Positions 2,724 to 55,580 of a DNA stretch of 64,000 nt are shown here, one piece after another. Every line of letters begins with the position of its first letter. Within the stretch, counting starts at the first letter, position 1. Source of the DNA: Takakia lepidozioides (lineage: Eukaryota; Plantae; Bryophyta); assembly GCA_030704615.1 (NCBI GenBank), contig CM060732.1, positions 55,738,001 through 55,802,000 of the forward strand. The letters run 5' to 3'. A program made the translations under genes and the position numbers. The notes under the pieces are model-generated. The model was not told the origin of the DNA and did not search any database. It saw only the letters and a program-made list of their open reading frames with translations.

Positions 2724-2795
2724 TATTAAGCATCGTCCAGAGAGCTAGAATCCTAGAGATGCAGGATTCTTGAGTGTAAGAAAGTGAAGGAACTT

Positions 2796-5336
<2,541 letters not shown>

Positions 5337-6468
5337 CATGGACACTTTGTAGAAATCTTCCTTGCGGCAACAACTTTCGTTTACGTATATAGTTACATAC
5401 CATTTTGAGAGCCCAAGACCTCAAATGAGATCTTAAACTTCTCCACTTAACCCAGTTTGTTTTCACTCATTGGAAAACACCATAAATAAGGCTCTTTATA
5501 ACTTGTCTCCTCCTGACATATGGTAGTGGGAGTGAGATTCGAATACCCCGTCCAATTCTTTTCCAGAGTATGTTCATACAGACACATGCTGCAGTTGCTG
5601 GGCTTGCATGGCGAGTAACTGCAAGTTGGGATTGCCAGGATAGGGAGGAAGGTAAAATTACCTTCAAAGAGTAGACATCAGTAGCAAGATATCTCTACTA
5701 ACTGTAGGTTCGCTGGGTCGCACTCCCAACCTTTTAGTGGTAGTTCAGTGGTACTGAAATGGCACAGCCCCAGCAGAGGCAAGAGGTAGAACTCTGTTGG
5801 TGTGTTTGCAATGGCAAGGTCTACCTGGTTTCTCAATCATCCTACTCCTCAGATTCTTCTTGAACAACAGCAAAGTACCCCTGCTGTATGATGTTAGAAA
5901 ATTTGCATACTTGCGTGCCACCTAGATGCACAACTCCTGGATCACATGGACTTTCAAGGAGTGAGTTGCAGTGTCATCGTGCTTAGGAACACTCTCCCTC
6001 ATTTGGTAGCCTGATGCAAAGAAAGGCATAGTTGAGATGATTGTCTGCACCATCAAAGAGTCTGAGCGCACACCTCCGCAGGCTCTTCGGCTTTCGGTAA
6101 ACCTAAAGTGGCACATGATTGAAAACGTAATCGAGAAATCCGTCGGCATTTGTTGAGGAGACTCGTCCTGTGATCGGGGGACTCATTGTAACAGGTGCTT
6201 GGAATCACGCAAAAGTACAATCTGTTGTTTTAATACATCATCACAAACGCCACATCTCTCTCTTCCTGCAGTCTTCGCTCACAATGTGTGCCATATCATA
6301 TCATACTCCACAACTCTCGGAAAGCTCAGAACAGAGAATCCAAACAGTTCAGAGATCCCAGAGCTTTTCTTTGTGCGTCGGTTGCAGAAAAGATCCATGG
6401 GGTAACTGACTTAGGCGCCCTCCTTACTGGAAGCGTGCAGACGCAGTCTGTGCGCAGCAGCTGCAGCT

Positions 6469-9400
6469 ATGGATGCAAATGCCAAGAAATCTGCGAAGGC
6501 TGGTAAAGGAAGCAGTCGAGATGCAACGCTCAAGCTTAGTAAGAATCGGCTAACACTTCCGCTGGGGCTTGCTGTTCTTGCATCCTCTGTTTAGAGCGCA
6601 GACTGAGATCACGTAATGACAGGCTCATAGTCGTGATTATATGAAATTCATGGTGTAGCATGAGGTTCTCTTTGGAAGGTTTACAGTAGAGTTTAGTTGG
6701 ACCGCAATTGAAGTGGGATACAGGGGTGTCGAGGGGGTCGGGGTTTGAGCGAAGACCAAATTACCGATGGGATGCACAACCTGCTTCTCTTTTTCAGTAG
6801 GAGGAATTTTGTTGTGTGCTTGCAGAGTCGCCGGCTGAGTTCTTCTCCGAGAACAAGAATATTGCGGGTTTTGACAATGTAAACCGTTTCTCACCACCTT
6901 CTTGCAGGCTAAACGTAGCAAAAAAATTCGAGCGACCAGCTACTGCAGAATAGTTTTCCTTGCTTTCCGTGATCATCACATTGGCAGTCCTCCCTTATTT
7001 TCTGAGTGAAGATGGAATTTGCACGTAACTATGATCCCATCATTACCATGATCACTAGTTTTTCTGGAGAGAAATATTTCATTGGACTTATCTTCGTCTT
7101 CAATCTCGATTTCAATTGGAAATGAAATGTTCATGAGTGGTTGGAGTGACACAGCCCGGGAAGAGTCTGTACACAACAGTCCGAGAGCTCGTGGAAAATT
7201 CCCTTGATTCTGCGGAGTCGATTGCCGAGCTCCCCGTCATTGAAGTCACCATGTGAGTAAGGATGCAAGTTGTTTGTGCTACAGCTTATTAGCATGGCAT
7301 CTCCAAATTTGCTATTCCTTCTCTCGCTATCTGTCTGTGTATCCCGATATTTATGCTACAAGAGGCCTATAGTGTGCCCTTTATCTCAACTGGAAGTGCA
7401 ACTACAGACACAGGTCACTCACACTTGTAAGGTAGAGGCATACATTGGTAGTGCTGAAATACGTACAGTTTTATGAGTATGATGTAAACCCACCACAATT
7501 CCCGAGCGAGGCCACAGAATGACCTGGAAAATAATTTACAGATCAGAACTCTTAGCTGTGAGTGAGCAACAAAGAAGGGGAGGGGCAGATCCTGGCTAGG
7601 GGTCCAAGGGGTTTATTTAAGTTGAAGGCTCATGATCCAGAAACTGAATTTTTTTCCATTGGTAGATTTCAGCCCTAGTATGCATCTTTCCTGTACTGAA
7701 TCGTTGTCAGCTATGCGTACGCGCTATGGCAAGTTTGGGTGGTGTTTTATTCAATGGAGGCTTAAAACCCCATGACCAGCTCCTAGGGTTGGACAAACCC
7801 ATGGAATTTTTCATCCTGGAATTCTTAATCTGTTTTGGAGTTTTGTCTCTGGTGCTGGAAGTATTACTTGCTAACCTGCGATTCCTGATCTGCAGTGAGG
7901 AGATTAGTAGATCCCAATTCAATGCCATGATCGGACTTGTTGATCGAGAGCGTGTAGATGCAGCCCTTTATGATGACTTTGAGTCTGAAAAAGCTCGGGA
8001 GGTAAGTTCTTGTATGTAATCTGCTAGCAATGTAGCTGGCATTGTTCTGCTAGATGCTTCACCTTGCTGCAGGTCTTTGAGGAAGTAGTATACGAAATTT
8101 ACTACATCTGCAGGGAGCTCCAAGGGCCCTAGGGGCACAGTTAAACCACAGAAACTAAAGAACAAATGAAACCCAAATGTTGCATGGAGTTCAAGTGCTT
8201 CATGGGTAAGCTGGAGCACTTCACGTCCTCATAACTGGAAGGCTTCTGCCACGTGAAAAAATTGACACAGAGAGAGGGAGAAGAAACAACTGCTTTTTTG
8301 CCTCCACCATCAAGATAAAAGCAAGAGAAATGAAATGAAATGGTGCTTTATAACGATAAAAGATAAAAGCAAGAGAGAGAGAGAGTGACAGAGAGAAATA
8401 AAATGATACTTTTATAACGTTCGTGTAAAGCTTAAAGAGCTTATGGGACGAGAAAGCATGAAACCAGAAAGAGAGAGGGGCCCTCCACAAGCTTGTTTAG
8501 TTCTATTGTTCAATCTCATGCATAGATGCTGCTAAGCATTTCTGATCCTTGTTATGGAAGACCTCTGTGAGAGATTGGTTAGACGATATAATCTCCCATG
8601 GATCTCACAGTAGAGAGGACAGTGAAACTGAGTCTCCACAAGCATTACCTGCATGCCTGGGAAATCGGTAATCTCATGGTAAACCTAGAGCAACAAGCTC
8701 TGCCGTCCAAAATTCTTGCCAACAGCATGTGTGGGTGGCAGAAACGTCTTGTCAAAGAAGCACGAGAGCAAGAGAAGCAAGCCAAGGCTATGGCTGCAGG
8801 GAAAAAGATGAAGGAAGCCGCTGCTCCCAAGTTGGGTAAGGGACGTGGTGAAACAGCCTTCTTCAAGGTCACTTGCAAGGTACATATAGGCTCCACATAT
8901 CTCACCTCATCACAAATGAGCAGTAATTCACCAATTTTTCTAGTGTTCTACCCCTTGCTTGAAGTTCTGACCAGGGTTACTAGGGTGTCACTTGGAGGCA
9001 TTGAAAGAGGGCTTTGGGTTTCCATCAGATGGTTGAATTCTTCTCGCAGAAAAGAAAGAAAGAGTCCACTTTTTTTTAATGTTCTCCGTTGGGCAGTTGT
9101 TGCCCGAGGAACAACTGGAATCTACTTTTGACTGTTTGGTATGGAAGACTAACTAATCATTTTGAAAGAATACTTCTTCCGAGTCAGAAGCAGATTTGAG
9201 AATTCTTTTTCATAAGCACAAACTATCCAAGCTTCAGGGGTGAAGGTTGATGGACATTCAGGGGCCTCGGTTAAAGAGTCTGAAGGAGTGCATGCTATTT
9301 ATCAACCCGCCTGTCAGGCACTGCATTATGCAATCATCTGCAGTATGGCTCTAGAATCCATGCTTTCTGCATGCTTACCTCAGTGATAATCCCAAAATAA

Positions 9401-12400
9401 AATTTCTGTTTGAGTTATCTTTAGTTGCTGATGTAGGTGGTTGACAATGTGTAGGATAATGGGAAAGGAATGCCGCATGATGACATCCCAAATATGCTTG
9501 GGCGAGGTAAGTTACTATTTGAAGCTTTCTTTTTTGGCAGTGATTACGAGAGTTATACTGAAAGTACAGATCTTGTAATGTATTGTTTTGGTGTTAGAAG
9601 AGGTAAGTACAAATTATGTATTATTCCAGATGAGGAGTGGAAAATCTGCTATATTGTGTCTTTAAGCCTTTTGGCTGTGGGATTTCTCTTACCTCGAACT
9701 ATGATCTTGATGGATTGTTTTTTGACTGTGTAGTACTTTCGGGAACAAAGTACGGCCTGAAGCAAACACGTGGAAAGTTTGGACTGGGTGCCAAGATGGT
9801 GAAGCATATTTCAAACTGCACCCATAATACAAAAACTTCTCCAAACAGGCCATAAGTTACCATCTTTTGTTCATAGCTTACTGACACAATCATTTGAGCC
9901 TTGTTTGGAGTTTTGCAGTATTCTTCTTCCCTTGGAAATCTTCAATTAAGGGGTGTCTACAAATCCTCATGTTGCAAATTGCAGGCATTGATCTGGTCAA
10001 AAATGAGCACTGGTTTGCCTATTGATATTTGGAGCGCTACAAAAAACCAAAGTTTTATTTCTTTCTGCCGACTCGATATTGACATCCACAAGTAAGCCTA
10101 GGTCAGCCCATGAGCTTCAGTTTGAGGCTTGTTGATGAGAACAAATTCTACCTTGCTCTTATCACGTTAATGCCATCCACTTTCTAGGCAGACCGGAGTC
10201 ACATCATCCAAATGCTTATATGATGGAGTGCAGAGCACATTATAGTAAACAGCTGGGCAAGAGAGAGCATCCTCTTGGACATCACACCTCCTTGATATTC
10301 TTGTTGCTAGGCTCTCTTGTGAAGCTATGTGCTAAGTTCTGCTCAAGAGATGACCAATGTGGTCCTAATGTAGAACCCATAGTGGGTCTGTAGCGGGCCA
10401 GTAACATCTGCTAGGTTGCTGTGTTTTTGCTATTAAAAGGGAGTGTGTGCAGTAATTAAGAGGGACCATGTTTCTATTTCTTTTAATGTATGTCATGGGT
10501 TATATCAGGAATGTTCCCAATATCCACAAGAATGAAAAGCGAAGCAATACAGAGGGTTGGCGTGGAGCTGAGCTCCAGGTCACCATTGAAGGCAACTGGA
10601 CTACTTATCGTGTATGTAAACAGAAGATTGTACCTGTCTATGCTGCTGTGGCAGTGAAAAGTGGAGGTGGCCGTTTGCGTAGTTGCAGTTCCTGGTAGTA
10701 GGAACGAGGTTGTTTGTCTTTAGAAAAGAAACTTCCTCGACAGGTGGTTGTTAAGTATTTGTCAATCAATAGGTGCCTGATTTAGGTTTGTGCTGATTAG
10801 GGACAGCATGTCTCATGCCTGTTTGAGTGTCTGTTTCTGTCTTGCATGCTGAAAATTTTTAAATGTAGTCTAGGGATGCCTTCACACCTTCATATGGAAT
10901 TTCATGTTGTGGTTGTTGCTTACAGTCAAAGATCCTTAACTACATGCGCCAGATGGCAGTCATCACCCCATATGCTCAGTTCCTTTTCCGCTACATCGGT
11001 ACAACAGCTGAGTGAGTGCTGCTCCTAATTCCTCTTCACTTTCCAGCCATACACAGTTTCACACACTCTTCCAATCTGTCCTGGCTAATATCTCTCCCTC
11101 TCTGGTGCTTCTCCTTCCTATGGGCTCTCCAGGATCCCTGTAAAGCTTCCTTCTTTCTTTTGAGAGGACTCTGCAACACGCACATCAGTGAGTTGTCTAA
11201 TATGGTGTTTCGTCTTCTTATTGTGCTGATTCTGAAAGTTGATATGCAATCTTTGCAGCAAGAATATGACAATACGATTTTCAAGGCGGACAGATGTGAT
11301 GCCTCCCATACCTGAAGAGACGAAATATCATCCGTCTGCTGTGGACCTCTTGCTCATAAAGAGATTGATTGCAGAGACAACAAAGCCGGCCCTGCTTCAG
11401 TTTCTGCAGTATGAATTTGTCAGCATCAACAAGGCACATGCTGACCGCCTCATTGGTAGAATACTGGCGGGAACGCAAAACTGGAGAGCATAGGCACTTC
11501 TTAACAGCAATGGACCTAGAGTTTTCAGTGTAAACTTGGGTCATGTCTGCTGGTTGGGCTTTGCTGGGAGGCTTTCCAGCTCTCCTGTTTACATGGGAAT
11601 TATGGAGCATTGCTAGTTTGGAGAGAGTACTCTACAGATATACTTACTGGTCTTCTTTACATCTGGATTACTGATCACCTCATTGAAATTGATCCTAATC
11701 TTCAGGTGAAATGGGACCAGAATTTACCAACAAAATGAATGTTAAGTCACTCACCGATGAGCAGATTGTCCGCATTCATCAGCTGTTCCGCCAAGCCAAA
11801 TTTGATGACCCAAGTGGCGAGGTAAATTTCCAGTGTTTTCAGTGACCAGGTTGCTGATTTACATGCAAGTGCAGTTCTATGAGTGCCCTGTTCTACTCAT
11901 ACTTTGAAATTTAAAATCATTTTCAAAATCAATCAGGCAGTGACAGAAGATAACAAGGAAAGACATTTTGTTCTCTTAAAATCCACATTTGGCTTCTTAT
12001 TTGTCGACCCTCAGTGTGTGAGATGAACTATGGGTTCAGTGCCAGTCTGTGCTTCACCCTCATCCAATCTTTCTGAAGACTTGTCATGTCACTCTTCACC
12101 TAATTGTTGTGAGCATGGCCCCACTATTATAACGTTGTCACTTTGCTTCTGCAGTGCCTCAGCCCTGCTGGAGAGTACAATCTGCGCCTAGGTATCATGA
12201 AGGAGTTGCATCCTGACATGGTCGCAACTTACGAGGGCAGGTAGTTTGAAACTTTTAGCCCTATCCTGTCCCAACAATGTTCTACTACTATGTGAATTGT
12301 TGCAATATCCACGTTCTTTTTCATCCTGTTTCAAATTCAACAAGTACCCAAGGTTTAGTTCTCCATGGCTACACTTCAGGTGCTCCTGGGCTCCTCCTGT

Positions 12401-15400
12401 GGCCTTTGTCGGGCCTTACGCAAGTTGGTCTAGCCAGCTAGAGGTGCAGTGCAGTAGTCAGTGAAGTAGTCAGTTTATGCATTGTCCCTTGGTGCTTCAT
12501 AGTTTTGACTGAAAGCAGTTTACTATGAGCTCTTGCTGCAATGCGCAGTCATCATTTACATCTTTCTTGCCTGGAGCACTTGGGAAGCACAAAGCAAAGT
12601 GCAGTCCTTGGCAATGTACAACCTTAACTTCAACTGAATAGGAGTTCAGTGCATTTCTGTTTGGAAGCTGAAGGTCCCGTGGTTTGCCTGCAGTCCACAT
12701 GTATTTGAAGGTCACCCATTTCTTGTGGAGGCAGGTGTCAGCCTCGGTGGTAAAGATGTGAAGCCGGTATTTGTCCTCTCTCTCTCTTTACCTTTGAGTA
12801 TCTCTTGAAGTTGAATATTTGTTTTTGGCTGCTCGTCGAGAGCCTCACAATCTTTCTTGTATCCTGCTATCTTTTTCCCATAAGCTCTTTGAGATTTACG
12901 CAGACAGTATAATGTACCATTTCATTCCGAGAATAAAGTATCATTTCATTTCATTTCTTTCTTTTTTCTAATTCTTGTGGTTCTTTCTCTCTTTAGTTTT
13001 CAGGATGCTTGTTGAGGGCCTCACCTTCTTTTCTACTGCTTTCTTTCGTCTTTAAGCTTCCCGCGGACGTTATAAAGTACCATTTCACTTCGTTATTTTT
13101 TTCCAAGCAATGCTTGGCGCCAGAGGCACAACTCCATCTCACATCCTATGTGCATGCGTGCCACTTCAAACCGAGGCCCTCTTCCGGCTTACAATCTTTC
13201 TTAAAAGGTTACAAGCCCTCCCACCCGAGGGGCTCATGGCAAGAGCCCTCGCAACATCTATTAGCTCAAAACAGCAGGTTTCAAGCACTCCTGGTATGCT
13301 CGAGTGTGCAGTTTTTTTGAGCACAATGGACTCTCTATTGCTTCACTACTCCACAAAATCCAGAAGGGGTGGAAATCACATCCAAACAGGACCGCAACAG
13401 ATTCAGTAGAAGAAATGAAATGAAATGGTGCTTTATAACGTCCACGGAAAGCTCGTAGAGCTTATGGGACAAATGGAAGGAAACATGAGAGAGGAACAAA
13501 TCCAGAAACCACAATTAATGTTCTAGCGATTGTCTAAGGGTGAAGGCCTCGTGTAAGTAGGCTGCCACGCATTTTTGATCCTCATAGTGAAAGACATCAG
13601 TGAGAGTTTGGGTTCCACTGAAATCTCCCACGGATCTCGTAGTATAGAGGGCAGTAGAAGAAGAAGTGTTCTTCAGTTTCAATTTCCTTGCTGCGCCCTA
13701 TGCAAGCTGGACATAGGCGGTCCTCCCGTTGCAGGTTTTCCCATCTGCCAGTCTCTATCCGTAGGTTGTGGGAACCCACCCTGAACCGCCCCAATGCCCT
13801 CAAGAGGGAAGGAGATAAGGGTGCTGAAAGGTAATTTGGTCTCAAGATTCTATCATCGCGGAGCACCAGGAATGTCTCTCGATAGAAGTGGAGCTTTGTC
13901 GTGAGATTGGGTAGCATCCAAGTTCTCTTGACATGTAATTCCATAAGCTCTCTCCGAATGAGTCTGTTGCGGTCATGTCTGGATGTGATGTCCACCTCAT
14001 CTGGGTTCATTGGTAATAGGAAAGCAGTAGAAAGTCCGTTACGTTGAAACTGTCCACTCGAGCATACCAGGAGTTCCTGAAACCTGCAGCTTTGAGCCTC
14101 ATAGATGTTGTGAGGGCCCTTGCCACTAGCCCTTTGGGTGGAAGGGCCTGCAATCTATGGAGAAAGATTGTAAGCCTGAAGAGGGCCTCGGATTGCAATG
14201 GTACACATGCGAACTCTGCACCTAGGATCTGAGATGGAGTTGTGCTCCTGGCGCCAAGCATTGCTTGGAGAAAAGATGACTGTAATGGTTCCAAATTCTT
14301 TTCCCACCAGGAGACAGGGACACCAGGTGCCCAGAACTCACAACCATAGATGGTAGCAGGGCTGACGACGGTGTCAAACAGCCACTTTTTGGTCGGGGGA
14401 TGCCGCAGATGTGTTTGCTTGCATTTGGCCTGAAGGCGGACGGAGGCCGCCTTACCTTTAGTCAACCTGTCCAAGGCAGTGGCTGCAAAGTGAAACGTGG
14501 GGGAGTGGATAACCAGACCTAGGTACCGGTATGATTTCACAATCTCAATTTCCTGCTGGTTGAAGATGAATCTACGATCAGCCTGGCCATTGAAGACCAT
14601 GATCTTGGTCTTGCTAAGGTTGACCTGCATCCCATAGTCTTTGCAGAACTGTTCCAAAATTTTGAGATGGCGTTGCAGAAAGACCGGGGATTGTGCCAAA
14701 AGGGCAACATCATCAGCATAGAGGAGATCTGATTGGGTTGGTCCCCCACCCAATGGGACCCCAACCCCATGGTTTTTTGATATGTAATTCTCCAAGGCGT
14801 CAATGGAGATCCCGAACAGGGTAGGTGAAAGGGGGCAGCCCTGTTTGACTCCAATGTTGCTGTGGATCTCGGCTGAGAATTCACCAGCGACGTTGACCAT
14901 GCCAGTGACAATCTCATACATAGAAGAGATGGCACAAAGGATGTCTGGAGGGACTTCCACTCTATAGAGCCGTTGGAAGAGAAGGTCCCGAGGAACTGAA
15001 TCAAAGGCTTTGTGAAAGTCCACGAAGCAAACATAGACCATTCTTTTGTCATAGCGTGCACTTTCCACCATAACTTGAAGAGTGAAGATGTGGTCAATAG
15101 TAGATCGGTTTCGACGGAAACCAGCCTGTCCCTCAGCACGAATGCGAGAGTACTCAGCCCAATCATCCAGTTCCATGGCCACTACTGCCCCAAACAGTTT
15201 AGCAAGTAATGAGGACACCATGATAGTACGATAGTTTGTCGGTGCGAGCCTGTCACCGCTCTTAAAAAGTGGGTGGATGATGCTCTTTGTCCACTCTGTT
15301 GGAAAGCCCCGTTGCACCACCTCATTGAAGAGGTTAGCTATAAAAGGGGCTAAAGTAGGTGCAGCATGCTTGATGAATTCACTCTGAAGTCCTGAAATGT

Positions 15401-18400
15401 CCACCGCTCTGCCATTTTGCAGCTTCTTGATTGCCTTACTGACATTGGCTGTAGTAAAGAGAGAGAAGTGAAGGGGTTTAGAGGTTATAGGAGAAGGAGT
15501 TTGGGTTGGGGAATGGTACAAAGACTGTGCATACTCATGCCAGACATGAATGTCAGTGATTGGGGGGGGGATCTCTATGAGGTTTAAGGAGGGACCAAAA
15601 AGATCGAGGAGAAAATCTGATTTTAGCAAGGAAAGAAGATTGCAACTTGATAGTGTAGGCTTGCTTTTTGGATCTAATGAGGGACTTATAGTGCTTCAGA
15701 GCAAGATTAGTGGACTCTGGAGAAGAATTGGTATCAAGTAGTAAAAATTTGATGCGACGTCTAGCAGTCTTGCATTCCTCATCATAAAATGGTGCGTAAC
15801 GACGAGTGGAGAAGGGTGAGGAGGTAGATGGAAGGGTGACGGGAAAGGATCGCAGGGCTGAGTCCCAAAGGGCTTGAGTAAGATGTGTAGCCTTGTCGTT
15901 AGGAGATGATAGATGTAGAATGGAAGGGAGGGTTGACGCTAGGTATGTTTCATACTCGGCGTCGTGTAAGTGAGAGAAAGGGGTATTAAAGTGGATACGT
16001 GGGTGTAAGGGAAGAGATGCAGAGGGGATCCTCATGGGGAGGGAGATGGAAGGAAATGCAAAGGAAAGGCAAGAGTGATCAGAATCCGGGTACCTCGCGA
16101 TGTAAAAGGAGCTTATTCTATCAGGCTTGTTGGGGCTCCCCAAGAGATAGTCAACCACGCTTTGGCCCTTGTACGTGTGGCAAGTGAACTGGCTGGAGGA
16201 TTTGAAGTTGGTTGTTCCATTGTAAATGGACAGCCCCTGAGTTTCACAAAACTTGAGTAGATGGTGACCATAACTTGTGATTTCGCAAGAGGAATCTGCA
16301 CTTTGCCTCTCCAATTCCGTATGCGAGCGTTGGATGTGTAGAGGATCTGTGTGGTCGAAGGTAGGGGCCTGTAGTGATCCTGTACGGGCGTTGAAATCTC
16401 CAACCAAGAAAATGTCCGTTTGTGGGGTACAGAGACGGGCCATATCGTCTTCCAATGGAACATATGGTGAATCTGTTCGAATATGTAGGCCGCTGTGCGG
16501 AGATGCAGCCGGAGCAAAATAACATCCCGCCAGCAGGATGTTGTAGCCTTTGATTGAAGAGAACTTATGGAACTACCTGTCAGGAGAACTTGGAAGCTAC
16601 CCACTCTCACAACAAAACTCCATTTCTATTGGGAGCCATTCTTGGTTCTCCGTGATGATAGAATCTTGCCAATTACCTTTCGGTGCCTTTATCTCCTTCC
16701 CTCCTGAGGGCATTGGGGCGGTTCAGGGTGGGCTCCCACAATCTACGGATAGAGACTGGTAGATGGGAAAACCTGCAACGGGAGGACTGCCTATGCCCAG
16801 CTTGCACAGGGCGCAACCAGGAAACTGAAACTGAAGAACACTTTTTCTTTTATTGCCCTCTGTATTATGAGATCCGTGGGAGATTCCACTGTCTATTCCA
16901 TGGAACTCAATCTCTCACAGAAGTCTTCCATTATGAGGATCAGAAATGCTTGGCAGCTTATTGCACAAGGCCTTGACCCTTGGGCAATCCCTTAAGCAGT
17001 AGTTGCTTTTGGGCTGCTTTTTGGCTCTGGTTTTGTCTCCTCTCTCTTGTTTTTTCCATTTTGTCCCATGAGCTCTTTGAGCTTTCCGCGGACATTAACA
17101 AGTACCATTTCATTTCATTTCATTTCTTGGCAATGTCCATGAGATAATTTGGTTGCCCCCTATTCCTATTTTTGGAAAGTTGTTAGAGTGCCTGCTGTGG
17201 CCTCAAGAAAAAGATATTTGAAAAATTCCAAGGAACTAAAATTGTACGAAGAATTGTTTGCAAGGACAAGTCAATGTAAGATGAAGCCATACGTAATCCT
17301 TTGTCAGTGCTTTACGAACTACAATCCATTTTAATCTTGTGCAGGGCATCAATGTTTTCCGTTTTGCAAATCGTATACCACTTTTATTTGAACAAGGAGG
17401 AGACGTGGTTACACGCACAGCCATGAAGCGCATCAAGTAAGCTTCTTCACAGTTTCTCTACTCTCTCAAAAGTAGGTGGCAATGTATGTACTGGGGTGGA
17501 CTGAAGGTCTTCATATTCATGCAGCTGGGTCAGCTATAAAATAAATCAAGCGCAAGACAAGATTGGCGTGTTTGTGAGCATTGTGAGCACGAAAATTCCA
17601 TTCAAGGGCACTGGCAAAGAGTATATTGGTGACGATATATCTGAAATTTCTTCAGCTGTGAAGGTATATACTGATGACATTCCCAAGTAGGTGAAAGGCT
17701 GATAAGGTAAGCGCAGAGCAATTAACTAGGATTCATATGTTGAAATGTAGTTGAAATTGGGGAACACGAGAATTTCTCACAATGTAGCTGAAATTGCTTC
17801 AGCTGTGAACGTCATTACTCATGACTTTTTCCCAAGTAGGTGAAGGTTGACAAGGTAGTGCGGAAGAATTAACTTGGATTCATGTGTTGAAGAAATTGTA
17901 GTTGAAATTGGGGAACATGAGAACTTTTTGCAAGACACCAACTTTATTGTTTGTGATCTCTCTCTCCTCTTGTCCCACAAGCTCTTTGAGCTTCCCACTG
18001 ATGTTATGGAGTACCATTTCATTTGTCTCTCTCTCTCTCTTAGTTCTTATTCTTGGGTTCTGGATTTGTTCCTCTCTCATGTTTTCTTCCATTTTGTCCC
18101 ATAAGCTCTATGAGCTTTCCTCGGACGTTATAAAGCACCATTTTATTTCATTTCTCTCTCTCTCTCCCTCTCTATGTCCAACGTCAGCCCCTGACAGAGG
18201 TAGGTTCTGTCCCTTTTGTTCCCGCTCAAACTGGGCGCGGGGTCAATGGCCACAAGGCTACGGCAAACAACGTCTTATGAGTACAATCTCTCTCCCTCTC
18301 TATGGCCACAAGGCTATGGCAAACAACATTTTATGAGTACATCTCTCTCTCTCTCGAACAATCGTTGCTTTTGGGGTGCTTGTGGAGGGCCCTCTCGTTT

Positions 18401-20384
18401 TCTTGTTTCTCTTGTCGCATAAGCTCTTTGAGCTTTCCACGGACATTATGAAGTACCAATTCATTTCATTTCTGTCTTGCTCTCTCCCTCTCATCTTTAA
18501 GCTCTTTGAGCTTTCTGCAGACGTTATGAAGTACTATTTCATTTCATTTCTCTTCTTTACAGCAATTTTGGAAAAGAGGTCAGAGGTCCTTCTGTCCCCA
18601 CCTCAAAATTGCCACTGCTGTTCGATGACTTCCATCTGGCACAGTGTTTTTTTTTTTCACTTTTCCAAAACCGCAGGCAGGGCGACATGTAGATTCTACC
18701 CAACGCCCATGTGGCGAGAATAACGAGGTGACAGAGCTAGAAAAGAGGCTATATTACAGGTGTCATATTTTAACAGGTCCACGTAGGACAAATCTGGCTC
18801 CTGGTATTTAACCTTTGGCGCTTTCTGGCGATTTTCTTGATTTTTATTCCCATAATTCCTTAGTAAAAGTAGCTGACCCATTTTCCAGGTCGAAATCTGG
18901 CGATTTTTCGCCAGAAAAAAAACACTGATCTGGCACCTACTGAGATTCTTTAAATCTACTTGTCTTTTTATTGCACAGTCGGCTCTTCAGCAATGCTGTA
19001 TACAGCTGAAGTCTAAGATTGTACGGCAGCAGCAAGCTCGAGATCAGCAACTGCGCAAACGCAACCTTTCTAAGTAAGCTTAGCATGTTTCTTATGCTAA
19101 TGGTTCTTCCCATCATTTCTGCTGGCCACTTGAGGAGGTGTATGTCCGTCTGTTCTCTCTCCTTCTCAAAATCTGAGATGGCGTTGTCTGAGCCTGATGA
19201 CACTGACAATTTTCCAGGTACATACCAGATGTGTCACGGGCCATCTACGATGTGGTAGAGCTTATATCCAGTGACCAGGAAGCAAAGAGGCAGCGCTATG
19301 GTGCAGAGTATACGGATATGCTTGACAAAGTAGCAGGCCGTGAGGTCACTGAGGCCACTTTCAAACAGAAGCTTACTGAGCATGTGCAGCAGGTCTGTGT
19401 TTTCCTCGAGTATTGTGGTGTCTCATTGTTGACAAGAGTAGGATTAGCAGGTTTCTCATGAACTTGATTCAGTCGGACTATATCCCTAGATGCCAACTAC
19501 ACCCTAAGTGTGACCAAGGGTCATATATTGGTACAAGTGGTGGTGGAGTGTCGGTGCTGCTGAAGCAGTCCCGCTTGGCCAGATAGTGCAACAATGTGAG
19601 CAAGATAGTCTTCCCTTTGAACAGACAACCCCTCTACAAGCCAGTTTTTGCCAGTATGTGGAAACTCAGCTCACTACTTTGGCAGCTCTTGTGCACAAAT
19701 AACATCTAATCTGGTCACAGGCCATTGAGTGCTCATTTGAAGGCTGACATTGAGATCACACCAGAAAACATAATAAATTTCAGCAGTATTAATATACCTC
19801 TCAACACTATACATGTAGATGTACTTGGACTGCCAGTCACCCTGTAGGACCAAGTAAACCAAACCATGAGACAGGTAGAGAGAAAGTACTCCTAAGACGT
19901 TGTTTGCCATAGCCTTGTGGCCATAGACCCCGCACCCAGTTTGGGAGGAACAAAAGGGAACAGATATGACATTTGTGAGGGGCTCACTCTGGTAGTGTGA
20001 CTTACCTTGATAGAGACAACAAATAGAAATAGACATAAAGAGAAAGCAATCTATTATCTCTGCTGAGGCCAGAAGGCCTATGGGATGCAGTAGAGAAGGT
20101 CTCATATTTGTTCTCCCTGACAAAGATGTACCTTCGATTGAGATTAGACCCTCCTCGAGATTGTGGAGGTTATGCAGCAGTATTATGTGTTTGTAGTATC
20201 AGAGTTAACTACTGGCTGGGTGATTCAGGTTGACTCTGAGATGGCGCTTGAGTATGCTACACAAAGTGGCATGGTGGACGCTGCTCGAGAGACTGTTTAT
20301 CTGAGGACTTTGGACAGCAACCGTACCTTTGCAATAGAGCTTCATAATCCTGTTTGTGTCTTACGTCTCTTCTCTGGCCTTTAA
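6469..20384 (+). CDS. TOP6B: DNA topoisomerase VI subunit B (19 exons)
   Basis: Exons ~6469-6538, 6826-6878, 7155-7252, 7896-8001, 8742-8879, 9455-9506, 9734-9798, 9985-10091, 10509-10611, 10926-11011, 11259-11455, 11706-11821, 12155-12240, 12694-12766, 17345-17436, 17525-17663, 18979-19073, 19218-19392, 20229-20384. Peptides SPAEFFSENKNIAGFDN, SLYTTVRELVENSLD, DNGKGM, TRGKFGLGAK (GHKL ATPase), RFANRIPLLFEQG, STKIPFKGTGKEYI and EMALEYATQSG match plant TOP6B. Confidence 0.96.
8329..8359 (-). mobile_element. 31-bp tail-only insertion of the RTEX-like LINE with a 17-bp TSD
   Basis: Minus strand reads ...CGTTATAAAGCACCATTTCATTTCATT, the terminus of the LINE ending at 13411. Flanked by AAGATAAAAGCAAGAGA at 8312-8328 and 8360-8376. 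Confidence 0.8.
8393..8495 (-). mobile_element. Short 3'-end copy of the (CATTT)n-tailed LINE family
   Basis: Minus strand reads GCTTGTGGAGGGCC...CCCATAAGCTCTTTAAGCTTTACACGAACGTTATAAAAGTATCATTTTATTTC, next to a (GA)n tract. Confidence 0.7.
12825..13092 (+). mobile_element. Stack of 2-3 short 3'-end copies of the (CATTT)n-tailed LINE family
   Basis: CCCATAAGCTCTTTGAG...GTACCATTTCATT (~12877-12927), TAAAGTATCATTTCATTTCATTTC (~12934-12957) and AAGCTTCCCGCGGACGTTATAAAGTACCATTTC (~13054-13086). Confidence 0.7.
13097..13409 (+). mobile_element. 5' part of a plus-strand, 5'-truncated LINE copy interrupted by the minus-strand copy
   Basis: Peptide MLGARGTTPSHILC..VPLQTEALFRLTIFLKRLQALPPEGLMARALATS is homologous to the minus-strand ORF at ~14276-13958. 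Confidence 0.85.
13411..16668 (-). mobile_element. 5'-truncated non-LTR retrotransposon (APE endonuclease, RT, C-terminal zinc finger), RTEX-like, in TOP6B intron 14
   Basis: Frameshifted ORFs: 16455-15553 (GDFNARTG, VVDY, SDH = APE); 15629-14007 (QAGFR, FVDFHKAFD, GVKQGCPLSP, YADD, YLG = RT); 14010-13597 (LRIETGRW...CPAC...ETEEHFFFYC). The 3' UTR has an AAGCTC-TAC-GAGCTT hairpin and a (CATTT)n tail. The clade is inferred from domain order, not from a tree. Confidence 0.92.
16669..17127 (+). mobile_element. 3' part of the plus-strand LINE copy (zinc finger, 3' UTR, (CATTT)n tail)
   Basis: ORF 16683-16976 is near-identical in peptide to part of 14010-13597. Ends GAGCTCTTTGAGCTTTCCGCGGACATTAACAAGTACCATTTCATTTCATTTCATTTC. 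Confidence 0.88.
17641..17927 (+). repeat. ~145-bp diverged tandem duplication spanning the TOP6B exon 16 end and donor site
   Basis: 17641-17775 aligns with 17788-17927 (CTGAAATT.CTTCAGCTGTGAA...CCCAAGTAGGTGAA...TGTAGTTGAAATTGGGGAACA.GAGAA). Confidence 0.85.
17960..18560 (+). mobile_element. Head-to-tail array of short retro-insertions in TOP6B intron 16: four (CATTT)n-tailed LINE ends and two (CT)n-tailed family-2 copies
   Basis: AAGCTC-N3-GAGCTT...CATTT units end at ~18025, ~18153, ~18472 and ~18550. Family-2 units lie at 18183-18300 and 18300-18355. All are on the same strand and separated by CT-rich tracts. Confidence 0.8.
18642..18927. mobile_element. hAT-type MITE (286 bp)
   Basis: TIRs CAGTGTTTTTTTT / AAAAAAAACACTG and a perfect 8-bp TSD ATCTGGCA at 18634-18641 and 18928-18935. 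Confidence 0.9.
19878..19988 (-). mobile_element. (CT)n-tailed short repeat, family 2 (inverted relative to the copy at 18183)
   Basis: Minus strand CCCTTTTGTTCCTCCCAAACTGGGTGCGGGGTCTATGGCCACAAGGCTATGGCAAACAACGTCTTAGGAGTACTTTCTCTCT matches 18211-18295. Confidence 0.8.
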
Positions 20385-21838
20385 TCAGCAACTCTTTGAA
20401 GCTCCTCCTGTCAAGGAATACTACAAGGCATGTATGAGTTTGTGGTCATGTCTCAACTACAGCAAGCGAGGATTGCATCAAGCAAGAGAACCTGCTGGTG
20501 GGCAGGTCTAGGGCACCCAAATGCTGCCAGACATTAGCTCTGAAGTGGTGTCGACGTTGATGTGGAACGGGGAGAAAGAGTGACCACAATACGTCACAGA
20601 ACAGTGACCCTAGATAACAGATGGAGAGGTTTGACCGGGATGCACTGTTGTATCAAATGAAGTCAGAAGTGCTTGAAAGGTAAATGAGATAAATTGACTC
20701 CTGAAAAATGAAAAGCCGGGGTATGGTGCAAAGGTCCACTTGGCTCTGAAATCTATGGTGACAGTGATCCCCGTGGTTGAATGCTCTTGCTTGTTTATAT
20801 CACAAGTGCAGTCGGGGTGGATGATGATCATTCAAGATAGGTTTGAGCTTGGTGTTCAAATCCTGGGGTCAAGGAGACATTTAAAACAACTTTGTCACAT
20901 GTTTTAGGTGGTTTAGAATGAGTTCCATACCCTCAGTATTGCATTTATCTTGAGTTCAACTCCTCAGTTGGAACTAAGCTGCTAATTAAGGCCCTTGGTT
21001 GTAGATTTCTATGCATTTGTGCATGTTCTTTGAGGAGGGATGTACTTGCCATGTTCATGCATGTGCGATATGCTCTGAACTGCAATTGATGCTCCATAAC
21101 AATCAACATTGGGTAGGGGACAGAGAAGGTTGTTTCCCTTCTTTGTTATCGGAAGGTGTGTTTGTTGATATTTTCCAATGGAGGCCTTGTCAAGTGTTGA
21201 TGTGTTGGAAACTTGAATGGAGTGCTTTTGCAGTGAATGGATTGGACACCCAGAAGTGCCAGTGTTGGCCAGGTTGAGGAATTGGCAAATGCAGTTGAAG
21301 ATGTTGCAGGAGTGCACATACTATTGAGAGGCCCAGATACCTTTCTTTGCCCAATAACAGACATCCTGTAGCACATCTGGTGTATAGAATTGGGGCATGG
21401 TGTGTAAATGTATATGTACGTTGTGAGACAGTGCCACAGTTTCATTGAGTGTGTGTTTGGAGTTGCATGCTTTCATGTGGTGATCGAGATCTTGGTAATG
21501 GTGAAGGGGCTGCCTTCTACATGTCAGGTTGGGGTACATAGCTCAAATGCCGTAGTCACATTGTCGAGTATCGTGCAGCATGCACGCTCTCAGTACGAGA
21601 CCAAGTGCAAGTGCAGGCCAAGCCCCAAATGCTGAAGCTGCCATGGGTCTACAGTGTGCTTATTATAACGGACGAGAGAAGAAGCTCTTGAGCTGGCAAG
21701 AGATGCTCTCTTGATCGTGTGAGCCAGCTTGTGTTGCAGTTTATGACATCGAAGCTTGCGAGCTGTCTTGCAGTACGAACCAGCATTCAATGTATCCCAG
21801 CCACTCAATGCCTGATGCCAGGCCAGGCCGGACAGAAA

Positions 21839-21867
21839 CGAAATGAAATGGTACTTTACGGTACTCT
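21839..21867 (-). mobile_element. 29-bp tail-only insertion of the RTEX-like LINE with an 18-bp TSD
   Basis: Minus strand reads ...GTAAAGTACCATTTCATTTCG. Flanked by GGCCAGGCC(G/A)GACAGAAA at 21821-21838 and 21868-21885. Confidence 0.75.
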
Positions 21868-22069
21868 GGCCAGGCCAGACAGAAAGAAAGAAAGGTAGGC
21901 GCCGACTGAGCCTTTACGTTGTCTTGTAGACAGAGCTCTGCAGATATTTGCTTAACTAACCCTGACACGACTCTGAGCACGAGCAGACATAACTCTTGTT
22001 TACAGGAAAAAAAGAGTTGAATACAACTCTCGAGGCCCCTTCGCCGATTGTGTCTGGTGAACTTTCAAG

Positions 22070-25000
22070 ATGCCGATGGGCACGAACGACAGCTTTCAGT
22101 GAGTTTTGGGGCTAATTCTCATTGTTACATTTGCTACACAGTACTGTTTTGGGTAATATTTTGCAGAGGGCGGCTGCTGGCCAGTGTCTTATAACAGCTT
22201 CTCTTCTGTCTCCCGGCGCGCTGTCCTGGGTCCGACTCTATTGTTGTCTCTCGCCCATTCTCGTTCTCAGGATTGGCTGGAGCTTGGGTGTGTGTGATCT
22301 CTCCAGGACTTTGGAAGCCCTCCCCTTCCGTGGCGTTTGCTGCCTGAAGTGGTCACACTTGTTGGTTCTTCCATCCAGCTCTAGCGTGTGCAGCACACCT
22401 GGTTTGGACACCATGGTACGTCCAGTGCATGCGTGAATTTCTCAGCATGGTCTCTTTTCCATGCGTATCTCTCAAAATTCTTAGCTCGCTGCAGTGGATC
22501 ATCTCGCATCTCCAGAGTCAGCTCGTCAATTGGTTTATGGTACTCGCTAATTGTCTGTTTGTGGGGGTCTGCATGCATCTATCTAGTCCTGGGAGTCTGA
22601 CACAGCTCCTTCCATGTTGCCATTCCACTTCTTGTGAGACGAAATCATCTCCTTGAAAACAAGCTAACTAAATGTCCAAATGATGTATCAATTGGACAGG
22701 ACTTACAACTGGTCGCGGATGAACGTCCCACCCGCAATGCCTGCCAACGCATTACGAATCACGACAATCATGATAGACAGACTTCAGATGATGAACTCGA
22801 GGATGGAGCAGTGGATATTAGAGGGAGACCGGCGAACAAGACAACAACAGGCCGCTGGAAAGCATGCTACCTTCTTATGGGTAGCGTGTCCAGAACGCTT
22901 TTACACTTGTTGCTGTAACTCAAGACCCATTGTCAACTTGAGACAACTCCATATCTTGTGAATTGACTTTCTGAAATCAAAGCAGAAGAAGGACCCATGC
23001 ATGCTTTCAATCAAGCCAGTCCACAATTTGTGTAGATTAGGGACTCTCACTCGAATTTTGGGACAACCCCCCTCAATTGTTGACATGTAACTGGATATGG
23101 TGGGAAGTGATGCACAACACCAGAATGCTATCAATTAATCTCTTGAATAAGTTAAATTTTGAACCACATAATTCGTTGTCCAGAGAGCTCCATGTGAGTC
23201 GAAGTTAGTATCAGGCCCTCTATAATTTGAGTGGCAGAAAGATACTTCACACACATAGGTTGCAATCTGATAGCACTTGCAGCGCACAACGTTGTCTAGC
23301 TCGTAGTATCTACTCTGCTGCCGGTCCATGGGATCATTGCCGGTTTCAGGCAACCATGTAACATTTGTACCTTCAACTGCTTACAGGCTTTGAGGTTTTT
23401 GAGAGATTGGCTTATTTGGGGATTGCATCGAATCTTATCACATACTTGATATCTGTGCTTCATGAGGAATCTGCATCGTCAATTTCGAGCGTATATAACT
23501 GGGCGGGTGCATCATGGATATCTACTTTGCTTGGAGGATTTATTGCAGATACGTACTGGGGCAGCTTCTGGACTATCGCAGTTTTTGCTGGTGTCTATCT
23601 TCTGGTATGCAATGATCTCCAGCCCTCAGAGTTGACTAGACATGTGGATGCTCACCTAGTGTTGTCATAAGGAGGTTTCTGAGCATTGTTGTAGTGCAGG
23701 AAGAAGCAATTTTTGCCAGTTTCGACTTGCCCGAGCTACTGTGACCAGTGTCTGGAATATTGGACATAGCCACATGGTAGCTTAACGTGGTCCATTTTTG
23801 TGTGTCAGGGGCTGCTGCTTCTGACGCTGTCGGTGATACTACCTGGCCTCAAGCCCCCTATGTGTCCCACCTCTGTCAATTGCAAAGCGGCATCAGCAGG
23901 GCAAATGGGCATCTTCTACTCCTCTCTTTATGTAATCACTTTGGGAGTGGGTGGTGTGAAGCCCAACATATCAGCATTCGGGGCATACCAGTTTGACGAG
24001 GAAGACTCGGAGGAAAAGGTGATGAAACGGTCATTCTTCAACTGGTGGTGGTTCTCCGTCAATATCGGCGGGTTGATTGCTTTTACAGGGCTTGTGTACA
24101 TAGAGGACCATGTTGGCTGGGGGTGGGGCTTTGGAATACCCACCGTCGGGTTTGCGATTGCGATGGGCCTCTTCTTCTCCGGTGCCCCGTTGTACCGATT
24201 CAAGCGCGCAGGTGGTAGTCCTCTAACAAGCGTGGCCCAAGTTCTGGTTGCTGCCTTCCGCAAGAGCAATGTAGCTGTCCCCTGTGATCCAAATATGCTC
24301 TATGAAGTGGATCAAAAAGGGAAACGAAATCTTGTTCACACCAACAACCTATTGTAAGTAAGCACTTTCCTTGATTCTCCAGGGATCCGCCTGGTCACAT
24401 CACGCTTCAGCATGTTAAGGCTAAATTCATGGTGTCACTGGTAGTTCCACCGTCAACAGCTTACTAATCAGCACGCTGATCCGGTGATCATGTAATTGAC
24501 TGCAATGACTAGAGCAAAATAAGCCAGTGAGCATGAGCCCGTTGGCACTGAAGCTGTTTCTACTCTATAGTACAACTCGCCTGTGCCAACTGTTGCTAGT
24601 TAGCTAGCTTTGACTCGTGAGCTTTAGCAAGCGTTCAAAGCTCGATTACAGTCAGTAGTACCAGGGGGTTTTACATATCTGAGCCAATTAGCCACGAGAG
24701 AAATCCTCAGGACTGAGAAATTGATTCAACGCCAGTGCGGCAGGCCTGTGAGCTTTGATCTACCACTTCTAGAAAATGTTCTACATATGTTTTTTACTTG
24801 ACTAAAGATAGCTAAATTATCAATAATCCAATCTATCCAGACCAGGACACACCCATTTCTGAACTTGTTACCATCGCAGATTCCTCGACAAAGCAGCAAC
24901 CCCGGTGGCCTGGAACATCGACCACAGAATGGGAACAGCGGACCCCACAGATGAATCACCGAAAATCAATCCATGGAGACTTTGTAGCGTGACACAAGTA

Positions 25001-25807
25001 GAGGAGGTGAAACTCCTCTCTCGGGTGATGCCCATTTGGTTGTCCACATTGGTATTCTTGATTTTGATGGCCCAGATCTCGACTTTCTTTCTAAGACAGG
25101 CAAGCACCTTGGATTTATCAATGGGATCCAGCTTCAAAATTCCGCCTGCCTCCCTTGAAGTGACCCTCACACTAACTATTCTCATCGTCATTCCTATCTA
25201 TGATCGATTCTTCGTTCCGTTGGTACGTCGGTTCACAGGGAATGAAAGGGGCATTTCACTTCTGCAGCGGATTGGAACAGGGCTGGTTATCTCAATCATT
25301 GGAATGGTGATTGCAGCTGTCGTGGAGAGGAAGCGACTCATGGTTATCAGAGACCATGGATTGCTTGACAATCCGGGAGCGACAATTCCTATGAGTGTCT
25401 TCTGGCTGGTCCCACAATATAGTATTTTTGGCCTTGCCCAGGTCTTCACATACATTGGACAGGTTGAGTTCTTCTATGATCAGGCCCCCGATGGCATGCA
25501 GAGCATCGGAACGGCTCTCTTCACATCAAACATAGGGGTGGCCTATTTCTTGAGCACTGCACTCTTAAAGGTTGTCGTCGGTGCATCAAAGCGATGGGGA
25601 CACCAGATCTGGATAATAGATAACCTGAACAGATGCCGCCTGGATAATTTCTACTGGCTCTTGTCAGCAATGAGTGCTTTCAATTTCTGTGTGTTCCTCC
25701 TCGTTGCCCGGTGGTACACTTATAAGAAGGCCGAGAGGAAATTTCAAAGCTACTCTTTTAATTTCAAACTAGACAGAGTGGCTCCAGAGCATCTAATTGC
25801 AGTCTGA
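22070..25807 (+). CDS. NPF: NRT1/PTR family (NPF) transporter, NPF5-like (paralog A)
   Basis: Exons: tentative 22070-22098, then 22606-22880, 23387-23604, 23809-24353, 24880-25807. Motifs TGRWKA, EVFERLAY, GGVKPNIS, FFNWW, WRLCSVTQVEEVK, QRIGTGL, EFFYDQAP. The start exon is uncertain. Confidence 0.92.
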
Positions 25808-33600: not shown

Positions 33601-34035
33601 CCTCGTGCATCACGCTCGTAAGATACGTCACAAGGCTTGCTATTATCCCGAAGTATGCCATTCGCTCGAACACTTGCCCCACTGTACACCATCCACGGGA
33701 AGATTGCCTCGCACATCAGAGTCTTTACAAGTTGAACTTCAACTTTCAATCTAGCATGAGCACTGTCCAGAAGATCTGGGTTTTCTTTGCAAACTTGACG
33801 TAATGAACGACTTACATAGCCACAGATGTGACCTCTTCTCTATAGTTGAAGAGAAGTGAATACCCATTAGGAATGCAGCGGCTTTCCAGCGGCCAGTGGT
33901 TGCCAAGTTGGCCGGTCTGCCTCTAAAGTCAACGGCACCATTGGACTTCAAATTCTCAGAACGGACCTCCTCTTCGAAGTTTTCAATCTGAAGTTTAGGA
34001 CTAGGAAGACTGTAGATGGCGTGACCCCTCTCCAT
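30694..34035 (-). CDS. NPF: NPF transporter (paralog B), 5 exons
   Basis: Exons ~34035-33864, ~33681-33464, ~32699-32130, ~31806-31361, 31164-30694. Motifs TGRWKA, QVFERMAY, GADQFD, FFNWW, WRLCSVTQVEELK, LDNLYW. Confidence 0.93.
32831..33313. other. ~480-bp GC-rich insertion in intron 2 of NPF paralog B
   Basis: Flanked by TTCACCAGGCAGG (32818-32830) and TTCACCAAGTAGG (33314-33326). The equivalent intron of paralog C is ~430 bp shorter and lacks it. Confidence 0.6.
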
Positions 34036-43652: not shown

Positions 43653-43753
43653 GCTGATGATACGCTTTTGTAATTTACAGTTTAGTTGTCAGGTCTGTAT
43701 GTATACACAAGTCTGTGAAGCTATGTAATCGACAGTCAGTGGGGCTTGTCTCT

Positions 43754-48653: not shown

Positions 48654-49366
48654 TGTCGCGCACCTCACTTCGGTAAGCTCCCCTTCAAGTCATAGTTACT
48701 TGCTCTGATGCGCACGCCTAACTCCCTAACTGGCCGCCGGGCCAACTCGGAGCTTCGGCTGCTCACCGGGACATAACGGTCCCCTTTACTCCTCCACAAG
48801 ACCCTCTCCCAATTTGGGCCTAGTGGAAATTCCCTTTGGTCGATGGCAGTCCGGAATAGCTCCCCACACCTTGGTCGCTTTCCGGCTCGCACGCTTACTC
48901 ACTAGTTTTGGTCACCAACAGGCTTGCACCGTTCTCGGGGTTATTACTCCCTATATATACTTCTGTGACTGTCCGCGGGGGTTTCACAAATAACCATGTC
49001 ATTTTATGGCGAACCACCACGAAAACCCTTGATTCCCGGTGATGTGTCGCGGTGAGTCTTGGCCCACTCACCACAGTCCCATTGGACCGTGATGAGTCCC
49101 AAGACTCCCCACAACTCCCACCACAAGGTCTCCGCCCCATGGTGAGTCCTATGCCACCCCCACTAAGTCCCACTAAGCTACCATCACCCTCGGGAACCAC
49201 CCCCACCGCAACCCGGTGTGCGGGGCTCCACTTAGTGAGCGCCTCCGCCTCCTTGAGTGCCTTGGACACTCAAGGGTGCTTTAGCCCCGCATCTATTGTT
49301 GCCACTACCCCCACCACAGGGGCAGCCCCTCTCGACCCCCTGCCCTCAAGGCGAAGGGCCGCGACA
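48654..49366 (-). repeat. 3' LTR (713 bp)
   Basis: TG...CA termini with a 7-bp inverted repeat; aligns with 51749-52468 and 55581-56193. Confidence 0.93.
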
Positions 49367-51745: not shown

Positions 51746-51748
51746 TTG

Positions 51749-55579: not shown

Positions 55580-55580
55580 G

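Follow-up and report, generated by a model that had tools for sequence, protein, structure and literature searches.

A CATTT-tailed RTE-like LINE and its stacked, mostly short copies at the TOP6B locus of the moss Takakia lepidozioides

In the eel long interspersed nuclear element (LINE) UnaL2 retrotransposition requires a two-part stem and about three UGUAA repeats; the repeat is where reverse transcription begins, and synthesis proceeds only once the loop is freed of protein and the stem unfolds (PMC1636434). The algal RTEX and plant RTE families listed by Ohshima (2013; PMC3747384, Table 3) all end in non-A microsatellites, and in the liverwort Marchantia abundant elements of the LINE/RTE-X class are recognised (bioRxiv 10.1101/827881). 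Here we analyse 64,000 nt of the moss Takakia lepidozioides (contig CM060732.1 of assembly GCA_030704615.1, positions 55,738,001-55,802,000; hereafter the window), in which 12 copies of the 3' end of one LINE with a (CATTT)n tail lie within and just beyond the gene TOP6B. We propose, with a probability of roughly 0.8, that these copies are ordinary products of target-primed reverse transcription of a single high-copy, endonuclease-encoding LINE with a conserved 3' module. Literature searches on RTE-X in mosses returned context and no description of this CATTT-tailed family.

The copies, labelled c1, c2 and c4 to c13, are listed in Table 1. Eleven matches to the 18-mer terminal motif, allowing up to 2 mismatches, span 8332-21857, where 0.03 would be expected in shuffled sequence. 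BLAST with the resident LINE returned 13 pieces that make up 12 copies in the range 8326-21858, and the identical 12 copies were recovered by an nhmmer profile of the tails (--max) and by a covariance model run with its filters off. BLAST with c8 alone under-called four of them because of a second subfamily of the 3' untranslated region (3'-UTR). In the other ~50 kb of the window BLAST, nhmmer and the covariance model gave noise-level matches only (E 0.27 to 5.8), and two of these, inspected by sequence, were unconvincing. A first-pass annotation, made from the letters alone, had reported about a dozen copies of one LINE terminus at 8.3-21.9 kb and none in the remaining ~50 kb; the dozen was recovered by four types of search and nothing convincing turned up elsewhere. 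Its coordinates for two very small inserts, 31 bp (8329-8359) with a 17-bp duplication and 29 bp (21839-21867) with an 18-bp one, proved exact.

All 12 copies share the exact 3' terminus and vary only in the position of the 5' end. Three are tail-only pieces of ~25-31 bp (c1, c5, c13), two measure 49-69 bp (c12, c9) and four 88-109 bp (c6, c4, c11, c10), such that 9/12 are at most 110 bp long; the longer ones reach 233 bp (c2), 887 bp (c7) and 3,144 bp (c8). Their ages are unequal, with identities from 67 to 100%. The shared 3' terminus, the variable 5' ends and the flanking duplications of 3-18 bp support the view, already taken in the first-pass annotation, that c1 to c13 all stem from a single LINE family that inserted by target priming, leaving target-site duplications and extremely 5'-truncated copies. 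In CR1, L2, RTE and L1 most copies likewise lack the 5' part and are flanked by duplications; compared with these, the copies here have a median length of ~90 bp, and three of the inserts do not reach double the length of the duplication that flanks them. The family is highly abundant genome-wide, at a read depth of 43,000-140,000 on tail-bearing bins against ~57 for single-copy sequence, figures which, like the 2,904 placed contigs, measure abundance and not copy number. An exact 23-mer scan of metagenome contigs gave zero matches.

Table 1. Features of the TOP6B locus, in coordinates of the window
Feature	Position	Strand	Basis	Remarks
TOP6B, host gene	6415-20400 (approximate)	+	RNA contigs, Topo-VIb_trans	
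c1, tail-only	8312-8376	-	covariance model (E 0.003), BLAST	insert 8329-8359 (31 bp); perfect 17-bp duplications 8312-8328 and 8360-8376
c2, older copy	8395-8627	-	BLAST, nhmmer, covariance model	233 bp; 67-80% identity
c4	12831-12926	+	BLAST, nhmmer, covariance model	96 bp, including the hairpin
c5, tail-only	12927-12959	+	BLAST, nhmmer	~27-33 bp, within/behind the c4 tail; flanking repeats CATTT-like, 10 bp with 1 mismatch
c6	13007-13094	+	BLAST, nhmmer	88 bp; hairpin 5' arm deleted
c7, left part	13097-13413	+	BLAST	5'-truncated, split by c8; matches LINE 2727-3050
c8, near-full-length LINE	13414-16557	-	Pfam, BLAST self-map, junction reconstruction	3,144 bp; local reference
Putative 3' recognition module on c8	13419-13466	-	RNA fold, covariation	
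c7, right part	16558-17127	+	BLAST	hairpin and (CATTT)4; 16558-17121 matches LINE 3048-3589
c9	17956-18024	+	BLAST, nhmmer, covariance model	~55-69 bp; 5' limit ambiguous within a CT run; (TC)n after the tail
c10	18047-18155	+	BLAST, covariance model	109 bp; 91-93% identical to c8; sits in the (TC)n that trails c9
Sister-family tail	18187-18286	+		~40-105 bp (three tails); small hairpin, ACGTCTTATGAGTACA-type box, no repeat tail
Sister-family tail	18302-18355	+		as above
c11	18366-18473	+	BLAST, covariance model	108 bp; starts directly after a (TC)n run
c12	18489-18559	+	duplication analysis	insert 18500-18548 (49 bp); 11-bp duplications 18489-18499 and 18549-18559, 1 mismatch
Sister-family tail	19885-19990	-		as above
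c13, tail-only	21821-21885	-	motif and duplication analysis	insert 21839-21867 (29 bp); 18-bp duplications 21821-21838 and 21868-21885, 1 mismatch, beginning TTTC

The resident element c8 matches Exo_endo_phos_2 (2e-6) and RVT_1 (4e-33) in consecutive minus-strand open reading frames (ORFs) at 14007-16455, the order endonuclease then reverse transcriptase (RT) that characterises an APE-type LINE, and the shared 3' end, variable 5' ends and flanking duplications of such elements are likewise found among the copies. The ORF encoding endonuclease and RT is interrupted into 3-4 frames, and as the reading frame is broken c8 is a dead copy. It begins near the N-terminus of the endonuclease, and with a frameshifted ORF its 3,144 bp do not fix the 5' end of the family itself. 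At its 3' end it carries the hairpin, a GACGTTAT box and (CATTT)~3. The element is nested inside the older plus-strand copy c7, which is about 79-82% identical to the LINE, and comparing the two halves of c7 with the homologous part of c8 reveals a 3-bp duplication flanking c8, AGA on the plus strand and hence TCT in the sense of the element. A non-A short-repeat 3' end, as in RTE and RTE-X elements, is present throughout, since all copies end in (CATTT)2-4 and none in poly(A). With ~3.1 kb, a single endonuclease-RT frame and no poly(A) the build of the LINE appears RTE/RTE-X-like. Searched with a 540-aa RT query, the best proteins are about 31-47% identical and all unnamed or 'hypothetical', and the RT relatives found come from metagenomic contigs, Adiantum, Taxus, Riccia, Klebsormidium and Chlorella. 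The CATTT-tailed LINE is a new family of a known type, namely a stringent-type, microsatellite-tailed, RTE-like plant LINE. It resembles the algal RTEX and flowering-plant RTE families in its non-A short-repeat 3' end, whereas the accounts consulted on those families mention no (CATTT)n tail, TCT sites or tail-only inserts.

The 3' module consists, in order, of an outer stem GUCC/GGAC, an internal loop, an inner stem of 6 bp capped by a 3-nt loop, the GACGUUAU box, a 12-nt single-stranded spacer and the repeat. Every sufficiently long copy shows the same order, with the box, the 12-nt spacer and (CATTT)2-4, the box being conserved as GACGTTA (GACGUUA in RNA). The c8 module folds at -11.7 kcal/mol with a z of -2.1. 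In an alignment of 8 sequences from 4 lineages, comprising the CATTT family, two relatives of 42-47% RT identity (L001 and L002) and a Klebsormidium LINE (L004), 95.8% of cells are paired compared with 17-49% when the partners are slid, and 3 pairs have changed on both sides; the stem-loop is therefore kept by compensatory changes, as in stringent-type LINEs. L001 and L002 keep the layout, although their inner stem differs and their tail is (TTTC)n; the Klebsormidium element keeps the box with a shorter stem and a (CAATTA)n tail. In farther algal relatives and in Riccia, too, a hairpin is combined with a short box and a short repeat. The sister-family tails of Table 1, which are not alignable in register, were kept out of the structure model. 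The best explanation appears to be that the CATTT-tailed LINE recognises its own RNA via this conserved 3' module, as stringent LINEs do. The likeness is to UnaL2 and the zebrafish ZfL2, both of the L2 clade, where a split stem is followed by about three 5-nt repeats; here a two-tier hairpin is followed by (CAUUU)2-4. Unlike these, the present family belongs to a plant/streptophyte RT lineage with an RTE-like build, and its GACGUUA box and 12-nt spacer are lineage-specific. A function of the hairpin in RNA recognition is presumed from its likeness to UnaL2. In contrast to UnaL2 and ZfL2, no partner short interspersed nuclear element (SINE) was seen, and the short copies in the window bear no SINE-like head.

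The 5' ends of the short copies can be placed on this structure. In c1, whose insert consists of 4 extra nt and 27 nt of LINE end, the first LINE-derived base is precisely the final base of the outer stem, and the starts of c5 and c13 are only a few nt from that point. The start of c12 falls within the 5' arm of the inner stem and that of c9 approximately at the 5' foot of the hairpin, while c4, c6, c10 and c11 start 88-109 nt from the end. This distribution suggests that reverse transcription may fail where the bound hairpin must open, and the three shortest inserts may form a discrete class ending at an RNA-structure boundary. The broader claim that the family usually aborts almost at once is not supported, tail-only copies being 3/12 at a single hand-picked locus. 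In c6 the deleted segment is exactly the 5' arm and the loop of the hairpin, as slippage across a palindrome would give.

The narrow range of those four longer starts could instead mean that the 50-110-bp copies derive from non-autonomous short RNAs (SINE-like, or processed from the 3' end) which contain the hairpin and are mobilised in trans, and partners with the same 3' end are indeed typically mobilised by stringent LINEs (PMC3747384, PMC1636434). We consider this quite improbable. Upstream of the hairpin these copies run into LINE 3'-UTR of two subfamilies and share no common foreign head, no tRNA- or 5S-like sequence exceeds the Rfam gathering thresholds in the window, and the tail-only pieces, which have no hairpin, are unrecognisable as separate RNAs and thus are not copies of separately recognised short RNAs. 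On the empty Rfam result and the two-subfamily 3'-UTR the SINE reading was rejected. Still less credence can be given to the notion that the 29-31-bp inserts are filler copied from a nearby LINE end during double-strand-break repair. It would account for c1, which at 30/30 bases (counting shared junction bases) matches the end of c8, some 5 kb distant, and has the rarer GCACC variant in common with it, and for the few extra, partly repeated nt at the 5' junction of both small inserts. However, all three tail-only pieces hold the exact 3' terminus and adjoin TCT-type sequence as the long copies do, and the 17-18-bp duplications indicate staggered nicks, whereas filler would take arbitrary internal segments; filler DNA is accordingly very improbable.

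Duplications are usable in four insertions, where they begin TCT (c1, c8, c12) or TTTCT (c13) and measure 3-18 bp. Of the 10 bases that follow the tail, 8 or more are pyrimidines in 9/12 copies, compared with a window background of 8.3% (binomial P ~3e-8, a value inflated because stacked copies share tracts), which bears out the earlier remark that tails run into CT-rich target on the pyrimidine strand. Orientation follows that strand, with minus copies at the GA-rich 8.3 kb region and plus copies at CT-rich 12.8-18.6 kb, and in other genomic copies the loose-end consensus beside the tail (place 13410) is purine-rich on the plus strand, that is, pyrimidine-rich in the sense of the element. As with microsatellite-targeting non-LTR (long terminal repeat) elements, insertion is into simple pyrimidine/purine repeats and stacks are formed. 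Such elements, as Kojima and Fujiwara are said to have described in 2004, are sequence-specific and belong to the R1 clade. Unlike them, the present family shows a loose preference: its targets are TCT- or CT-rich but heterogeneous instead of one microsatellite, c7, c8 and c13 lie outside (TC)n or (TTTC)n arrays proper, the target of c8 is a lone TCT in a LINE body, c13 adjoins GGCC repeats, and c7 has no CT flank.

What selects these sites bears on the proposal of the first-pass annotation that the CATTT tail chooses CT tracts by annealing, that immediate abortion is normal and that tail-only inserts drive a self-feeding lengthening of introns. Several observations fit it. The c13 duplication starts TTTC in a (CTTT)3 tract and that of c1 starts TC, so that 2-4 nt could pair; c5 lies inside an earlier CATTT tail; and short copies predominate. 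However, the sister family, which has no repeat tail, adjoins TCTCTC-like sequence at each of its three tails, all of them in TOP6B introns, and the (TTTC)n-tailed relatives L001 and L002 likewise adjoin CTCTCT. Only one of ~9 stackings is in a tail, the others being in CT flank, and the short copies (ten in number) have added ~0.85 kb compared with ~4.0 kb from the two long copies c7 and c8. We therefore regard the annealing proposal as somewhat unlikely. Against annealing of the tail as the targeting cause stand the tailless sister at the same TCTCTC and c8, whose duplication is only the 3-bp TCT. Endonuclease preference explains the sites at least as well, and since a tailless family adjoins the same sequence in the same introns, we favour the view that site choice would lie with the endonuclease, with tail pairing aiding priming.

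The sister family resembles the CATTT family in its hairpin and box, in its TCT/CT-rich landing and in head-after-tail stacking; it differs in its tail and in a hairpin and box that do not align in register. Its two plus-strand tails together form the 56-bp 'tandem repeat' reported by TRF between c10 and c11. Two further segments on the minus strand may be related. At 9040-9125 a 7-bp-stem hairpin, an A-rich box and (TTTC)3, as in L001 and L002, could be the tail of a third family (covariance-model E 0.5), and at 8095-8240, just downstream of c1, a hairpin-like sequence followed by ...CTGCAGATGTAGTAAATTTC could be an old diverged copy of the same or a related family (nhmmer E 0.27). If the latter is real, the LINE-derived share of intron 8000-8739 exceeds half.

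Stacking, in which a copy starts 0-45 bp behind an earlier tail, has occurred about nine times. Only c5 sits in a CATTT tail; the other stacked copies re-use the CT-rich flank duplicated by the previous event, as where c1 lies 20 bp downstream of the c2 tail. Template jumping is known for non-LTR reverse transcriptases, and the tandem tails could be single events in which the RT moved from one LINE RNA to the next. This would suit c6 and c7, which are nearly contiguous (c7 begins 2 bp past the end of c6), and c4 and c5, 6 nt apart, none of which has a clear private duplication. But c12, which lies 15 bp behind c11, is flanked by a private 11-bp duplication, as c1 behind c2 is by a perfect one of 17 bp; neighbours differ in age (identities to c8 of 80% for c9 and 93% for c10, and of 67-80% for c2 and 100% for c1), and two families are interleaved in one array. 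The private duplications, the unequal ages and the interleaving of families speak for successive events and against template-jump arrays, and we hold template jumping to be improbable. In the liverwort Riccia sorocarpa (L003, CM100801.1, 4780-5290) a LINE ends in a hairpin and (TTACCAG)3, and its end directly abuts another LINE fragment, likewise 5'-truncated, which brings a separate hairpin and an A-rich repeat, an arrangement indicating that head-after-tail stacking occurs in a liverwort also.

The host gene is a bryophyte-type TOP6B, its identity confirmed by profile matches together with spliced contigs. RNA contigs place exons at 7896-7999, 8740-8877, 9732-10091, 10509-10611, 10926-11011, 11259-11454 and 11705-11819, with spliced contigs and GT..AG joints in runs X6 and X7; the later exons were drawn from reading frames and GT..AG ends. 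In an exon-by-exon search, the exon at 12.7 kb matches Topo-VIb_trans profile positions 33-54, that at 17.3 kb positions 58-84 and that at 17.5 kb positions 86-134. The spliced contigs put c1 and c2 within intron 8000-8739, and by the profile matches on those three exons 12768-17344 is one intron. At 4.6 kb, this intron is 93% LINE. The growth postulated in the first-pass annotation is thus real, yet it came mostly from long copies and not, as supposed there, from small tails feeding their own spread. Likewise, stacking in TOP6B introns holds for the copies up to 18.6 kb, whereas c13 lies beyond the last recognisable coding exon and is not shown to be intronic. The introns tolerate the inserts, and TOP6B is still correctly spliced. 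The c1 insertion is present in a second sample too (X5 contig 8326-9346, the only contig from that sample). At 17664-17900 a TOP6B exon end, a donor-like site and the intron start are tandemly duplicated over ~130 bp.

All the copies fall into five independent clusters within 13.8 kb, contributed by two or three related families. The supply of targets was considered as the cause and ruled out, since pyrimidine-rich 10-mers are equally frequent outside 8.3-21.9 kb. The clustering may reflect preferential insertion into transcribed DNA, longer survival of copies within introns, or chance. Confinement to TOP6B by chance or differential retention, with old introns kept and intergenic DNA turned over, has in our judgement even odds against a preference for the gene. 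Five independent clusters are few, the scan statistic of ~0.009 is post hoc and of modest significance, most copies are old (67-87% identity), and elsewhere the window is occupied by probably younger DNA, with a Ty3-type LTR element and duplicated NPF genes. Against chance or retention, two related families, and possibly a third, have all their tails within the TOP6B span, and covariance-model and profile searches found no tails of these families in ~22 kb of other non-coding DNA of the window, where pyrimidine-rich targets are as common.

As to that neighbouring DNA, a minus-strand Ty3/chromovirus-type LTR retrotransposon with gag, RT, integrase and chromodomain occupies 48650-56170, and an LTR-like block present in three copies (~48.65, 51.75 and 55.58 kb) suggests a tandem or recombinant element with a shared middle LTR. 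Three NPF/PTR2 transporter paralogues lie at 23300-25800 (+), 30700-33950 (-) and 43750-46500 (-); the two minus-strand copies, 13 kb apart, are 77-81% identical in DNA over ~3 kb, and between them is a PPR gene with 303-nt internal repeats (37.3-40.1 kb).

Based on these data we propose the following course for target-primed insertion of the CATTT-tailed LINE. The endonuclease would nick the bottom strand opposite N|TCT, and the terminal UC or UUUC of the RNA repeat would pair with the freed DNA end and prime the cDNA. An early stop would be frequent, with one discrete failure point at the 3' foot of the hairpin giving the 25-31-bp tail-only inserts, and further stops would occur within or just past the hairpin (49-69 bp) and ~90-110 nt in. 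As each duplication copies the TCT-rich site, a used site would stay usable or become more so, and arrays could grow.

Several points weigh against this proposal. Two copies, c6 and c7, lack a pyrimidine-rich or duplicated flank, and the duplications of c9, c10 and c11 lie in low-complexity CT runs where they cannot be sized. The tail has TC at its own end, so that sequence does not separate pairing of the tail from specificity of the endonuclease. The link between truncation and the hairpin foot comes from very few cases, one exact and two approximate, because c5 and c13 have 5' ends that can be placed only to within several nt. Reads of four runs over 7500-13450, where contigs break at repeats, yielded no empty-site allele for c1, c2, c4, c5 or c6. 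Finally, the evidence is one window with 12 copies, chosen for its clustering.

The type of element, the microsatellite tail, the target microhomology, the 5' truncation and the stacking are all established LINE behaviour, and what is seen at the TOP6B locus is an extreme form of known LINE biology and not a new kind of element. A further conjecture, which we put forward tentatively and as a whole think unlikely, is that hairpin opening is a rate-limiting checkpoint whose failures form a discrete and abundant class of 25-31-bp tail-only inserts with full-size duplications, and that this class, together with re-use of TCT sites, mainly in transcribed introns, would seed TTTC/TC-rich simple sequence and lengthen bryophyte introns largely unseen by transposable-element annotation. 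Should tail-only inserts prove common across this genome, a measurable part of its LINE activity escapes standard repeat annotation, as does a source of intronic pyrimidine-rich simple sequence. The locus offers a natural read-out of the points at which an RT aborts relative to an RNA structure supported by covariation. Since Klebsormidium and land plants both keep the hairpin-GACGUUA-repeat module, RNA recognition of this kind in plant RTE-like LINEs would be very old.

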